Shown here one piece after another: positions 36,401-44,760 of a stretch of DNA of 64,000 nt; the first letter of the stretch is position 1; every line of letters begins with the position of its first letter. The translations under genes were made by a program, and so were the position numbers. This DNA comes from Auanema rhodensis (lineage: Eukaryota; Animalia; Nematoda). The stretch is taken from the NCBI GenBank assembly GCA_964057225.1, contig OZ059896.1, forward strand, positions 17,484,001 through 17,548,000, given 5' to 3'. The notes under the pieces were generated by a model. That model was not told where the DNA came from. It was given only the letters and a program-made list of their open reading frames with translations, and did no database searches.

Positions 36401-39311
36401 AAGATCAGGAACAGAGGAGTACGCGAATGTGAGATGTAGCGGAGGTGGACTAGCACTAATAGTTGATGATGAAGAAGAAGAAGATGGAATGGAGGAGACA
36501 AGATACGAAGGGAGGAGCACATAATACTTCGGGCTGCTCTGACAAGCCATAGACGAAATGATGGAAATGAGAATGTCATGTGCTCATGAACTGTCACTTT
36601 TACTCTAAGGAGATTAAACTTTTTGAAATTACAAAAAATTGTTGAAGTTTTTAATTGCATTGTGAGACAAATGGCAAATAGGGTACTTGGAGGAGTAGCA
36701 CGAAAGGAAGTCGGTGCTTTGTGCGTATGTGTGTGTCACGATGTACATCATTGCATGCTGGTGAGGGAAGCATGAAGAAGAACACAAACTGACCACATTG
36801 TCTTCCTTTTTAGAAATGTACGCTGAGCTTGATCATACGCACAGCTTAAATATCGGAATTTGTATTTCCCACGAGATGCATTTTTCTATCACATCTGCTG
36901 TTCATTATCGGGAAAAAAATTTGTCTTCAATACGAATTGCTGTCAGAGTTCAATGGGAAGGAAGAAAAAGAAGAAGTAAAGCAGGAAGAATACGGCATAA
37001 CATTAACACAAGCCGATTGATGAGCCTATATAGAAAGAAGAAGTATGAAAAGAAGTTGTAGTGTGATTTTGCAAGACAACCAAAAGTTAATTCCATCTTT
37101 TACGGGCTAAATACGGAAAGCACTTTTTTCTTTGTCATTCATTGTTCACTTAGTTTTAACTATTCATAGGCAAGATGTATGAACTTATTTTAAAGTTAAA
37201 GCATTATCTTCCGCCTATCCAGCATTGTAATATTTGAGTGACATGATTGAAGAGTTCATGAATTTGCTTAAATCAGGAAATTTCATCAAAATAAGCTTTG
37301 CATATTATATTTTTCATTTTATTATAAAATAGATAATAATGAATTATAGATGAATATATCCTTAATTATCACAATAAATGTAATAAAGTGAACAACGTAC
37401 TTCATCTATCTGTCGGTTAAGAGCATCATCATCTTTGACTTTCTTCATAATGATGTTCTACACAATTTCAAATGAAAATGTGATCAATTCAATACATTAA
37501 CTGTTAATGATCGTAGAACAAGATAATAAGATGTTCAAAATTTTATTTCATTCATTTCTATTCGAATTCATTTAATTGATTTTAGTCTATAAACTTTGGT
37601 GTTCAGAAAGAGATGTTCAGATGGCAACACAATCCAACCTCTGTACCCTCAGTTTGATAAAAACTGACGATCGTGTTGAGATGAAAAGACAAATGATCCA
37701 ATAACGAAATTTCATTTAAAGATTTCTCGCAACACCCTCTCTCTCTATGTGAGAAGGTGCTGTAACAATTTCAGAATTCGCAGACGGCAAATGTTCTATA
37801 CTTTTGCCATTTATTAAAATATTTTTCAACAAAAAAAAAAGAAGTTTCTCTGACATTTTACTTGAAATTTTGAAGTTCGTGTTATATTCAAACATTATAT
37901 CAACAAAATAAATAAATAGATTATAATGAATGTTGTTTTCTACTAGATATCAAACAAAGTCTTTCATCAGCTTGACATCCAATGACGTTCAAATCTCTTC
38001 AGCTCTTAAAACTTCAAAATTTTTTATTATGAGTCAATGTTAGTTTGAAAAAAAAGAGGATTAATACTAATTAACAGATGAAAGAATTCTTTTTCATCTT
38101 GTTTTCGAACATTTATTATATTATATAAATATTTAAATAAACTTTACAAAAAGAAAACAAATTTATATTATATGTATTTTTATTATTCAAAATTTTGTAT
38201 ATTATATTCAATTTTGTCGAACTTCAACATTTCAATTTTAGAATATTATTTGAAGAACATGAAAAATGAAAATCAGCGCTAATTGGTTTTTTTAATAGTT
38301 ATGTAATGCATGTCAATTTGTTTTTCTTAAATTTCAAAACCCAAATACATAGTTTTAGTAATTCAATATTATTTGTTATATTATATATAATTTTATAATA
38401 AGAGGACCATGTGCTAAGCACAATTAATTTTCTTTTTTTTTCTTTTTAAACAAAAAAAAAGAATAATTGGAATAGGTCTGACCTTTGATTTGCATGATTG
38501 GAGAAATAAATTGATGAAAAAATAGTTTTAAACGAGAACATATAACAACATGAATTCTATAAATATAAGAATTGAATATCTATGAACATATGATGTAAAT
38601 TTTGTTTTTAAATTAAAATATATGTATATAAGAATATAATATCAATTAAATAATAATTAATTGATGTAAAATTTAATGAAGACAAGGTGAGAGAAAGATA
38701 CATTGATTAGTGCATGTGATTTAAAATGTAATCAGATTTCATTTATCTTTAAGCTTATCTTGACTAATATCAAAAATCATTTCATTTTACATCATCTTCT
38801 GTGTCTCTTGAAACATCTGTGAAGAGATAATGTGCAATAACCGGAAGATATTCGAGTAAGTTGCATAAATGCCAGAAGAAGTGTTAGGATAGACAACCAT
38901 CCCATAGGCATTCGAATTGTGATTTATGAATAATAATAATTAATAAAGTTATATATATATATATAACAATTAATAAAAAAAACAAAATAATTAAATAAAA
39001 TAAGATTTATTATTTTTTTGTATTTCAAACTACAACAAACATAAAAACAGTATTGATGAAAAAAAAGAAAACCCGTAATCATTGAATAAACAAAGAAAAA
39101 GCTATACTATTACATGTGCAACCGGGATAATTAAGTTAAGATTTCAGAAATTATTATAATTCTTTAGTGTTTTTTATACATATTATCTTAAATACATTTC
39201 TTTTTTAAAGCAACTTGCATAATACTCTCAAAATATGAAAAATGACGAGATTGAACAGATGAAAAAATTTCGAAAAAAAACTAAAATTTTCAGGAAAAAT
39301 AATACAAACAC

Positions 39312-42300
39312 TTAGCGACATCCTCGACCGAAAATAGCTTTCCAAAAGGCTTTGAAACGGCCACCTTCACGCTTGATTTTTGTTTTGGAACGAAGGTCTT
39401 GGAGTCGTTGGAGGCGTCTGAGCTCAATAAGATGATCATCGATCATTTGAAGTCGTTGATCAGCTCTACGGACGTCGTCTTCGGGTAGGTTAGATTCAGC
39501 TGAGCGGGCACGAGCAGCTTCAATGATAAGAAGGGCAACGGTAGCTTGGTCACAGACATCAGAAAAAAGATGACAGAGGTAAGCCAAATCATCTAAGCAA
39601 TCAACTCGCTCGGGATGACAGGCAGGGAATGATTTGGCAGCAATCTTCATAATTTGGGCATAGGCGAACTGTACGCTCTTCCAGATGTTTTTACGGCTGG
39701 TACGTCCTTTCTCATTACGTTTGCGAGAAAGTACATTGAGTTGATAGAAACAGTTGAGAAGAGCATCAGCAAAGAGAGGGAGATCCTCAGCGTGAACCTC
39801 ACCATAGGTGATTTCGGTGATGATTTGAGTAGCTTGAAGATACGCAAGCTTTCTCTCTTCAATAGTGTCTTTTGGTGAGATAGAGTCAAGGATCATTCCA
39901 AGTTGTGTGGAGTTTTCATCCGAATTAAGAATAGCAAGAAGGGTTGAGAGAGCTTCTCTGGTAAGAGAATCATCTGATCTGAGGGATAGTCTAGATTGAC
40001 GAACAGCAGAGTCTGAAAAGGAGAAAATAAGCAAAATTGTATAACAAATATGTGAAAAAAAAGAAAAAGAGGTAAACGAAGTAGAAACTCACTGCTTTTC
40101 TTCAATCGGTTTTGTTGCAGTTGCTCATCTCCGTTATGCTTTTCAGTTTGTACACTCTTCTCTAACAAGGTATTCATCTTAGTAATTCGAGAGAAGTTGT
40201 GAATTTGTTGATTACGAATAACACTGAAAAGAAGAAAATAAATAAAATAATATTATATTATATTCTAAATAATATATGAAAGAAATCTATATGAACGATA
40301 TGATAAAGGTGCGAATGAATAGACATCTACAGAGATAGAGATGAAGAGAGTGAGCGGATAAAACTAGATATTTGAACAGTCGAAAGATACTTCAAGAGTG
40401 TTTTCCGCTCTCTAAGCTTCATCGCCTTTCTCCAAATTCTCTTTCGCAACATTATACATATATAGATAGTTGATCACAAAGAGATATTACTTTCATTTCT
40501 GTAAATAGGGAAGAAAAACGAACTTGAGTTTAGTAGGTGGAATAAGCTTTGGCTCTTCGACTCTGTGAATAGTTTTATCGATGTGCGATAGTACTTCGCT
40601 GAGTAGTGTCTGCTTTTGAGCATGAAGGATAGGAGTATGGCTTGAACCTTTGCGTCCAATTTCCTTTAGACGATGATCGAATGCGTCTGATGCATCAAGC
40701 ATCTTACGACGGATTTCACGAAGCTCTGACAGCACCTAGAAGAAGATAGCGTTGCAGAAGCGGTTCGATGTAAGAAAATGCTAAACATACCTTAAGTTGG
40801 CTAGTTTCCATTTGTGGAATTGAAAAAAGACGATGACCGTTATGGCTATTGACACAACACTCAAGGCAGGAGTATTTCTGAAAAATCAGGATAGATTAGA
40901 AAGGGTTTTTATTTATCACATAACAAGATGAATAATTAGAAAAAAAATTAGAAAAAGTTCAGAGGAATGTGATCAAGAAGGGTTTTTACTCACCAAAGTT
41001 CCAGAATTGTTGCACATGACACAGTAGCGAGCGATCTTTGCAAGATTTTTGGATGACAATTTACGGTGACAATCCAGGCATCTGTAAACAATAAAATATA
41101 ATAAAAATTAATTGAATTACAGTAATGAAGCATGAGATAGTGTGAGATGAGATGGAGGGGCGGACATCCAAAACAGCTGGCAGTTTCAAATACGGTCTGG
41201 CCTTGTGCCAAAGGTATCATATTGCCATTCGATTTGTTGTCGACTTTCTTACCCACTCACTCATCAGATCATTGAACTCGTTTTGAATGATGTTTCAAAT
41301 TGCATTAAGTGGTGTTTATATAGAAAACATGTAAACAAGCCGATATTCGACCCGAATTTTCATTTTTTTGACAATATAAACCAGTAATCTTTATATATTT
41401 TATGGAAAAGACGATAAAACACATACCTTTGATGCTTTGCTTCACGACTCTTCTCAGCTAGACTTCTGACAGCAGTTCCTAACTTCTTCTCTCGTTCGAT
41501 TACAGTAACTTCAGGAGTATGAAGTACAGTAGTGTTATTGAATTCTCGTCCACGTTGAACGGTTTCGAGCATTTCTGAAGAGAATAATCTTAATTTTCCC
41601 GGAAATATCATCAACATCTATATTTGTGTCAAACACCAGCTGCCATCTGGCTATAATTAGAGGATTGGCTTTCAAAAAAACTGAATATAATGAAGGAAAT
41701 ATGATAATATTCTATCCTTTTTCATCTCAGAAGCTTGGATTAGAAGAGAAGCATATGATGATGATGATGCAAATCGAAAACAATATTATGGCACTTATGA
41801 CCTAATTTGATTTTCTGCTTTTAGAGCTTAGATATGAATGTTGTAATCATGTATTAATGCTTACTCAGCCTATGTCATGCTGTCTAGAGTTATGAACTGT
41901 CAGGAGGAGTTGATGGCACACTGACTGTAAAACGATCACATCACATGACCTTATAGAGTATAAGGGTGATATGACTTCGAGGAGGAAAAAGTTCATAAAA
42001 TGGTTATTTGGGAATTTGTTGAAAACCCAAAAGGAAACTGTTTTATTGCAAAATCTTCAATGTTTTTCTTGAAAAAAAATGAAAAATGTGGATGAAGATG
42101 AAATAGATCAAGTTGATGCTGAACCAATGGATTACATGCATCATTAAGTATTTTTCTTGTAGATGTTTTTTTTTTGAAAACGTGAAGGACTAGAAGAACT
42201 TTTGTGGGAAAAGGAATAGAATTTGTAGACTGGATTTAGTGAATTCTGATAGTTTGTATAAGCAGGACAAGAGATTATCTGCTCACAACATCTTCACAGT

Positions 42301-42771
42301 CATTCTACACAGCACGGAGCTCAAGTGCTAGGCGTCTAATGGGGGGTGATTAGATAAGACAATTGTTTGGTATAGACTGAGAACCAGAAAAAAAACCAGA
42401 AAAAAGCGGAAGGTTTTGAATTTTAAAAAATATTTTGTTTGGCGGAAAACTTACTACATAAGTCGTAATTGGTGGGAGCTGAACGGGCAACAGCAGTGCT
42501 GAACGATGCACGACAAGTAGGGCAATTGATGGAATCCAATAGATAATACTATAAGAAAGAGTATATTGAAAACTGTTTATGTACAGATGATACTTACCTG
42601 TTGATGACAACAGATGCTAAACAGGCATTGTTCACAGAAGTTATGTCCACAGGGCAGTATCTTAGGTGGACGATGCTGAGCATCAAATGGCTCCATGCAT
42701 ACTTCGCATGAGATAACTTCGTCTCCTTCAATAAGGAAGGATACTAAACGGCCACACGTAGTGTCGACCAT
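39312..42771 (-). CDS. TRIM-like protein: C3HC4 RING, B-box-like Zn finger, coiled coil and a divergent 14-3-3-like helical domain; probable E3 ubiquitin ligase, about 8 exons
   Basis: The ATG at 42771 follows GTTTTAG. RING: CEVC...PKILPCGHNFCEQC...INCPTCR...APTNYDL. B-box-like: CLDC...CVMC...SCLECCVNSHNGH. Then a heptad-rich segment and a large last exon (ORF 39312-40034). All splice phases I checked are compatible. Confidence 0.85.
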
Positions 42772-44760
42772 CTCTAAAACAGACAAAAAAATTAGTGAAA
42801 TTCTGCTAGAAGACAGGAAAAAACGAATGAAAACAGTTGAAAGATTGAAGAACAAAATCGGAGGATAAGCACCTCGAACAAGGAGGTAGAATAGACGACA
42901 GCAGGTGAGATTGCAAGAGAAAAAACATCTGTTAGAACATGAGAAAAGAGCCGACACGAGAAAGAAAGAGAGAATAGGCTGAAAATCAGATGATGAGATA
43001 AGATTTGGTAAATCAAATATATTTTTTAAAATATTGAAATTTTAGCAGAAATATTTGCAGAGTGCAACGATTTAAATCTAAAGAGCTAAATTAGGTAACT
43101 AGAATGACGTCGTCATTCCAGCAGCAAAAAAGAAATAGAAAAAACTGTGTGATGATGGCAGTGTCATTCGATAGAAATTTCATTGAAAGGACATTTAGAC
43201 ATGAAACTATCAAAGCGGGTGAGTCGCCCGAATTAACATTAGAAAACCGGCAAGTTTCTTCAGAATCTTGCGACATTTAATTGTTGAAATCAGAAAAAGG
43301 ATATGTAAATGCTTGTAATCAGAGATGAATTTTGAACAAAAAATCATTTGAAATATAAAGTGAAGAATAGAGAGAGGAAGTGAATTAATAGAAGTGAGAA
43401 CTGTAGAACGCTAAATGATTTGTATCGGAGACAAGGTGAAGTGTGAGGGAATAAGTGAATATGAAGTTGAAAGAGAAAAGAGATGAAGCAATGAGTCGTA
43501 GCTCTTGAAGATGGTATTCAACACATCTGTTCAGCTATTGTGCTAGAAAAGGGATGATGAATAAGATGGAAGATAATAATTTTGAAAACTTTTTGTTTAA
43601 AATTGTACTGAGACTAGGCAGTTGATAAACAGAAAAGAGACAAGAACGTTTTGAATGAATGAAGTCAGAAAAACTTGAACTTTATCTATAAAGAAAAGGA
43701 AAAGAGAGAGGAAGATTTACATAAAGAGATTATTAAGAAATAACACATTGAGATATGAAGAAAGAGCTCGAAGACAGAAGATGTTCTTCCTAGGCAGAGT
43801 GAATGAATGAATGAATGCAATAGCTCCAGACTATGTATAGAAAGTTGTCGGAAGAAATAGCATCATAAAGTTTTCGGAACCAAATTCAGAAAAGACTGGT
43901 TATGATTGTAAAAAAATGGCCCTTATAGACGGGAAGACTCGGCACAACTCTCAAATGAAGTTGATTCTGTGATCTTATGATTGTAAATAAATATAGACTG
44001 ACTGAAAATTCAGAAGTTTGTGAACTGCCCCCACAATGAAGGGAACCTGGCCAGATTAGCGTTCAGGCTGGTGAGAGAAGAACCTTAGAGGGTTGAGAGT
44101 ATGAGTAGATTAGTGCAGCAGTCGTCATGAACTGGGAAAAGAGCCAGACCATCAGATGAAAATGGTTGGAATGAAAAAGTTATGTGAAAAATGAGTATTA
44201 TAAGAATTTTGAAGATAAAACTACATAAGTTGACAGAAAAGTTGAATCAAATTCAAAAAAAAACTTTTGGTAAGTCACTAGAATGAAATATTGAGTTAGT
44301 AAAGAAGTTATTTCAATATAAATAAAAAAGAAATTGTTTATAGCATAAGTTTCTAAGAAAAAAATTTAATCTAAAATTTATAAAAAAAAACATTTGGTGA
44401 AAGAATGGTTCACGTCATGTGATATCAACTGAATGAGTTAAAGTAAATATGAGTAAGGTAACACATGAGTGACCAGTGGTCATGGTTTCTTATCTGATTA
44501 GTGCTTGAAACTTAGATAGAACTTGTGCCCGTTGCTAAGTTTGTTATCTGGTATATCCATCAGAAGTTGTAAGAGATCAACTGCACGAGCCGACCATCCA
44601 GACTGTTAGAACCTCCGGTCATCAAGGGGCGGATCGTCTTCTTGATTTACTGTGGCAAGCGAGAGAGAGAGACAGGGGAGGAGAAGATGGAAGGGCCGGG
44701 GTTCTTCTGGCTGATGTTGATGATGAATGGAAGAATAAGGAGATAGCTTGCTGTGTCCGG

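Follow-up and report, generated by a model that had tools for sequence, protein, structure and literature searches.

A probable TRIM-like RING ubiquitin ligase of Auanema rhodensis with a predicted 14-3-3-shaped C-terminal domain, from a family of chromadorean nematodes

We analyzed a 64,000-nucleotide window of the Auanema rhodensis genome (contig OZ059896.1, positions 17,484,001 to 17,548,000), in which a gene on the minus strand had been predicted to encode a TRIM-like ubiquitin ligase (RING, B-box-like finger and coiled coil) fused to a degenerate 14-3-3 domain. Coordinates given here are positions within this window. Translation of the minus strand and location of the splice motifs yielded an eight-exon model (Table 1). 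In each of four public runs from a single study, which are only presumed to be RNA, one contig of 1.7-1.9 kb covers all eight exon blocks and omits precisely the predicted introns. Six of the seven joints in these contigs were listed as CT..AC on the plus strand, corresponding to GT..AG on the gene strand, while the seventh was deduced from contig pieces. The contigs lack introns and therefore represent a spliced product, although the nature of the runs is presumed. Because single contigs cross all the junctions from 42598 through to 40012, exon 8 and the RING exon are parts of one transcript. This removes the concern that exon 8 might be a gene of its own and bears out the single spliced frame of the original prediction, with a RING, a B-box-like finger, a helical region and a C-terminal domain. 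On the 3' side, contigs of two runs (X1 and X2) reach about 130-150 bases beyond 39200, within the 3' untranslated region. The gene is thus real, expressed and made of eight exons.

Table 1. Features of the RING ligase gene, in positions of the 64,000-nucleotide window
Feature	Position	Strand	Basis or content
Start codon ATG	42771	-	Opens exon 1
Exons 1-4	42771-42598, 42548-42455, 41574-41427, 41081-40994	-	Reading frame and splice motifs
Exons 5-8	40877-40791, 40735-40524, 40223-40093, 40012-39312	-	Reading frame and splice motifs
Exon 1	42598..42771	-	First six RING zinc ligands; Pfam and contig junction 42598/42548
Exon 2	42455..42548	-	End of the RING (C-P-T-C pair) and 'APTNYDLC' motif; junctions confirmed
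Exon 3	41427..41574	-	Linker from RING to second finger; junctions 42455/41574 and 41427/41081 confirmed
B-box-like finger	40791..41081 (exons 4 and 5 with intron)	-	Conserved Cys/His pattern
Helical region, putative coiled coil and variable linker	40093..40735 (exons 6 and 7 with intron)	-	Heptads; junctions confirmed
Predicted nine-helix alpha/alpha-superhelical domain	39390..40012 (exon-8 residues 1 to ~207)	-	Alignment-based model
DUF7758 match	39564-39782	-	Pfam, inside exon 8
Polybasic, aromatic, Cys-containing tail	39312..39389 (exon-8 residues 208-232)	-	Character conserved among 54 orthologues
Stop codon TAA	39314-39312	-	Closes exon 8
3' untranslated region	39200..39311, extends below 39200	-	Spliced contigs span 39200-39311

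The window protein was searched exon by exon, and its nearest database protein, CAI4224459.1 from Auanema sp. JU1783 (538 aa, hereafter P0044), served as a full-length stand-in. P0044 is colinear with the window exons at 76-97% identity. Exon 1, which is 90% identical to its residues 1-58, matched the Pfam families zf-RING_UBOX (E 2.6e-8) and zf-C3HC4 (E 4.4e-6). In the orthologues, the RING match is full-length (profile positions 1-39 of 39) and crosses the boundary between exons 1 and 2; the RING ligands are invariant, and so are C67, P68 and C70 in an alignment of 43 sequences. Exon 3 has a conserved start (the '..NVTVIH..' region in relatives) followed by a variable remainder, and matched no Pfam family. 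The stretch from the RING to the second finger contains a motif, 'APTNYDLCK.LE' followed by 'N(V/I)TVIH' (42455-42480 and 41540-41574), that includes an invariant Thr and is as conserved as the zinc ligands; it had no match in Pfam. The second finger follows the pattern C-x2-C-x15-C-x2-C-x9-C-x2-CC-x3-H-x2-H, and all eight ligands (C2-C2-C2-H2) are invariant in 41 orthologues. Its commonest weak Pfam match was zf-B_box, seen in 21 of the 41 members, and 'B-box-like' seems a fair description. In the helical region that follows, a home-made test found the hydrophobic periodicity at heptad positions a and d to exceed that of shuffled sequences in all 29 orthologues, with a mean z of 1.8 and z>2 in 12. 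For a low-confidence ESM Atlas model of P0044, all shape neighbours were TRIM proteins, with low template-modelling (TM) scores of 0.2-0.27.

Exon 8 translates to 232 aa and is 91% identical to its counterpart in P0044. A single-sequence AlphaFold2 prediction was unusable, with a predicted local distance difference test (pLDDT) of 49, and we relied instead on a model built from an alignment of 54 orthologous sequences (pLDDT 91.8, predicted TM-score 0.86). The segment is all-helical in this model, which has nine helices, the last one being long (residues 177-230). According to the model, the C-terminal domain is a nine-helix alpha-solenoid, 14-3-3-like in shape. In Pfam, exon 8 matched DUF7758 (PF24944) over residues 77-149 with 30.6 bits, above the gathering cut-off of 27 (E 4.4e-7), and 30 of the 54 orthologous domains also matched this family. 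The DUF7758 model, 126 positions long, leaves roughly the last third of the folded domain uncovered. Conservation within the domain peaks in the block 'DDLA.LC.L.SDVCDQAT.T.C.IEAARAR' (39520-39590, exon-8 residues 141-170), most of which lies outside the DUF7758 match, and the Pfam model appears to truncate the folded domain. Beyond the domain, the tail averages 8 K/R, 0.7 D/E and 3 aromatic residues over about 26 residues in the 54 orthologues, in which it comprises the last 20-40 residues. The basic character that had been predicted for it is conserved, with a net charge of at least +4 in 52 of 54. At least one Cys is present in 39 of the 54 tails, often in an 'A/G/S-C-F' context, and none of them has a CaaX end. 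Model confidence is low over the tail (pLDDT 55-74).

An exhaustive search of 1.84 billion representative proteins with exon 8 returned 30 matches at E<=1e-3. All 15 full-length matches (500-730 aa) have the exon-8-like segment at their C-terminal end, and RING models matched the N-terminus of nine of the ten full-length relatives scanned. A search with the Caenorhabditis bovis member gave 64 relatives, full-length and colinear with the window exons; family members are 500-620 aa long. All source-named matches are chromadorean nematodes, and outside nematodes no member was found among the 1.84 billion representative proteins. The genera include Caenorhabditis, Pristionchus, Haemonchus, Necator, Steinernema, Bursaphelenchus, Heterodera and Globodera, with additional members in Ascaris relatives and in the filariae Brugia and Onchocerca. 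Word-indexed homologue searches with exon 8 and its alignment, which were subject to a length limit, matched only fragments of the same family. The C. elegans orthologue is C45G7.4 (NP_500203.1, UniProt O76354), which is 45% identical over exon 8. C45G7.4 and the other nematode orthologues have their parts in the same order along the entire length as the window protein, with no structural difference.

Most family members were named 'RING-type domain-containing protein' by their source, others 'hypothetical protein', and a few were automatically called 'E3 ubiquitin-protein ligase TRIM50'. In the literature searched, C45G7.4 was mentioned once, as a neighbour of ilys-3 (PMC4985157), and we found no mention of DUF7758. 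C45G7.4 is absent from the list of 18 C. elegans TRIM genes of Sardiello et al. (2008; PMC2533329), and queries combining RING with '14-3-3-like domain' surfaced only papers on SMG, Est1 and Roquin. The prediction had left unconfirmed whether the architecture is absent from databases; it is present in them, since more than 60 orthologues including C45G7.4 are on record and DUF7758 covers part of the domain. The architecture is already catalogued, in UniProt entries and in Pfam, but uncharacterised. The gene belongs to a family of probable chromadorean-nematode RING ligases that includes C45G7.4 and is unnamed and unstudied.

The alignment-based model of the C-terminal domain was compared with known structures, a check that had been proposed along with the prediction. 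In a Foldseek search of the PDB, 14-3-3 chains took almost every one of the first 50 ranks, and 14-3-3 is the closest natural match in structure to the modelled domain. In the structure comparison, identity to 14-3-3 reached 16-18%, against at most 15% for all other rows. When the model was superposed on 14-3-3, its last five helices (E-I) fell in one stable register, whereas the equivalence of the first four differed among rows: in some, model residue 1 was paired with 14-3-3 residue 45, and in others model residues 21-28 were paired with residues 23-38. The resemblance has limits, as designed helical repeats equalled 14-3-3 on Z. Geometry alone, at least as modelled, fails to separate the domain from generic helical repeats.

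Taken together, we consider it likely, on balance, that the product of this expressed rhabditid gene, an orthologue of C45G7.4 with about 540 residues, is a single-subunit RING ubiquitin ligase of TRIM-like architecture, with a nine-helix 14-3-3-shaped domain and a basic tail. By analogy with its family, the RING would recruit a charged E2. The B-box-like finger and the helical region would probably make a coiled-coil scaffold and dimer of the TRIM type. The nine-helix domain, which contains DUF7758, would most likely be a substrate- or partner-binding module that works independently of phosphate. Finally, the polybasic, aromatic and often Cys-bearing tail would probably attach the ligase to acidic membranes, perhaps with help from S-acylation.

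Several results weigh against this reading. No zf-B_box match of the second finger was significant among the 41 members (best E 0.032), and the heptad signal after this finger is weak. When the second-finger profile was compared with PDB sequences, no TRIM B-box was recovered; the matches were limited to a viral Rep protein and eIF5, with non-significant E-values. As for the 14-3-3 shape, the Foldseek matches that top the natural structures are themselves weak, with E-values from 1.4e-2 upward and TM of 0.38-0.47 (mostly 0.43-0.47). A shape search of the ESM Atlas with the domain returned TPR and importin-like proteins instead, at TM 0.45-0.51. In sequence, exon 8 had no match to the Pfam 14-3-3 family (PF00244) even at E<=10, PF00244 was absent from the Pfam families listed for the 54 orthologous domains, and the 54-sequence profile found no 14-3-3 at E<=10 among 177,635 PDB sequences, where exon 8 alone had nothing relevant. 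A forced global alignment of the family with 14-3-3 by hhalign was meaningless.

These last results bear on the origin of the C-terminal domain, for which two explanations were weighed. The domain could be a lineage-specific helical repeat of the TPR or HEAT type, its likeness to 14-3-3 reflecting a common antiparallel arrangement of helix pairs. The Atlas shape matches point this way. In addition, canonical 14-3-3s, taken as controls, weakly match TPR models themselves, indicating that the two classes overlap. On the other hand, classical TPR models matched none of the 54 members, the sole TPR-named match being TPR_DENND3 in one member (E 0.014). The 14-3-3 rows of the structure comparison surpass the repeat rows in identity and have a lower root-mean-square deviation at similar aligned length, and the register of the profile alignment described below agrees with the superposition on 14-3-3. 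We regard a lineage-specific repeat as a credible origin, though not one that we would expect.

Alternatively, the domain could be a true descendant of 14-3-3 that became joined to a TRIM-like ligase in an early chromadorean and was later deprived of its phosphate-binding residues. Apart from the leading place of 14-3-3 among natural Foldseek matches and the higher identity, both domains fit nine helices into some 200-230 residues. The ESM Atlas clusters nearest to the domain by language-model features hold nematode proteins of 213-241 aa, and these clusters carry both PF00244 and PF24944 matches. For profile comparisons, a control set of 14-3-3s was assembled from metagenome contigs caught by a degenerate C-terminal-signature pattern, from which 20 diverse full-length open reading frames were chosen; locus L012, a human-gut metagenome contig, was excluded. 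PF00244 was verified in 20 of 20 controls, three of them at E 1e-78 to 1e-110. Between the family and the 14-3-3 profile, hhalign gave a single local match, 37 columns long (Prob 2.8%, P 0.016), aligning exon-8 residues 104-140 with the 'HPIR' region of 14-3-3 at the boundary of helices F and G, where the register agrees with that of the structural superposition. The real pair scored 23.4 and the reversed profiles 9.6-13.6, neither of them attaining the real score, which 2 of 240 column shuffles did attain. This match is the first segment of the by-eye alignment on which the 14-3-3 assignment had been based; the alignment can be reproduced, yet it exceeds chance by a narrow margin only.

Other observations count against such a descent. 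The hhalign probability is very low, PF00244 was found in none of the 54 members, and conversely the canonical 14-3-3s had no DUF7758 match. Two 14-3-3 signatures, with PROSITE-type patterns checked on the controls, were missing in all 54 members but present in 17 of 20 and 20 of 20 controls, respectively. The profile recovered no 14-3-3 from the PDB, designed repeats tie in geometry and the four N-terminal helices lack a stable equivalence. Even the shared 'HP' is missing from about half of the family: across the 54 members, the H of 'HP.R' is kept in 22 and the P in 28, the R alone being invariant. By helix register, the Arg-Tyr pair of 14-3-3 helix E would fall on exon-8 Y89-Q90, in line with the original prediction, and the family majority there is likewise Y and Q; this mapping was derived from the model helices, the superposition and the known limits of 14-3-3 helices. 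The predicted loss of the Arg/Tyr pocket agrees with this and with the missing signatures, while the term 'degenerate 14-3-3', with the ancestry that it implies, is not upheld by the Pfam, PDB and hhalign results. Descent from 14-3-3 is, in our opinion, a somewhat unlikely origin for the domain. It is very improbable that exon 8 is a separate gene or that the gene model is a prediction chimera, of which the only hint is a set of C-terminal-only database fragments (P0001, P0007 and P0012) from fragmented assemblies, because single contigs in four runs span all seven junctions, the full-length relatives carry the domain C-terminally with a RING in nearly all of those scanned, and the locus of a second species is colinear.

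The probable TRIM-like ligase can be set against the systems that it resembles. With TRIM/RBCC ligases, such as TRIM32 and the C. elegans TRIM32-like GRIF-1 (PMC9565796), the family shares a RING, a Cys/His finger, a helical region and a presumed target-selecting C-terminal module. It differs from them in that its second finger is below significance for zf-B_box and its C-terminal domain differs from every one so far described for TRIM proteins. GRIF-1 was ruled out as the identity of the gene, being shorter and terminating in the coiled coil. In comparison with 14-3-3 proteins, the family lacks the Pfam match and the signatures, the Arg/Tyr pair appears to be replaced, and the N-terminal helices of the domain are shorter, with an ambiguous equivalence. 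Moreover, the domain is one part of a multidomain ligase, with a long terminal helix and a basic tail after it.

TRIM ligases select their targets through a small and well-known set of C-terminal domains, to which this family would add a 14-3-3-like helical cup and a basic tail. The family has been retained in free-living and parasitic nematodes (Brugia, Onchocerca, Haemonchus, Ascaris relatives), including major parasites of humans and livestock. The existence of the C. elegans orthologue C45G7.4 makes its function open to direct genetic testing. Tentatively, the domain may be a 14-3-3 descendant that was captured in a chromadorean ancestor by a membrane-anchored, nematode-restricted TRIM-like ligase and stripped of its phosphate-binding residues, an outcome that we doubt. 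If it were true, a phospho-reader fold would have been put to unusual use as a ligase receptor, and the domain would be the first substrate receptor derived from 14-3-3 within a ubiquitin ligase. If it were false, the family would still be an uncharacterised, conserved and nematode-specific E3.

Additional observations concern the layout of the gene. Intron 2 (41575-42454) is 880 bases long, whereas the other six introns measure 49-345 bases, the one between exons 4 and 5 being 116 bases. No notable open reading frame and no RNA family were found in intron 2, and neither an Rfam family nor a tRNA was found in the whole window. The locus of the second nematode (Logan contigs L001-L003, at about 4965-6772 in L002) has the exons in the same order, and its introns are fewer and smaller. 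In L002, the counterparts of exons 3, 4 and 5 are contiguous, with tiny gaps elsewhere, and an extra break of about 37 bases (6438/6476) lies inside the exon-8-like region, indicating that intron positions of this gene vary among species. Upstream of the start codon, contigs of three runs (X1-X3) extend to 42780 on the minus strand with exactly one mismatch in 42772-42780, and in the genome a TTTTAG acceptor stands immediately before 'AG ATG'. As a guess, the end of these contigs near 42780 might be a trans-spliced leader of the SL1 type (ending ...GTTTGAG).

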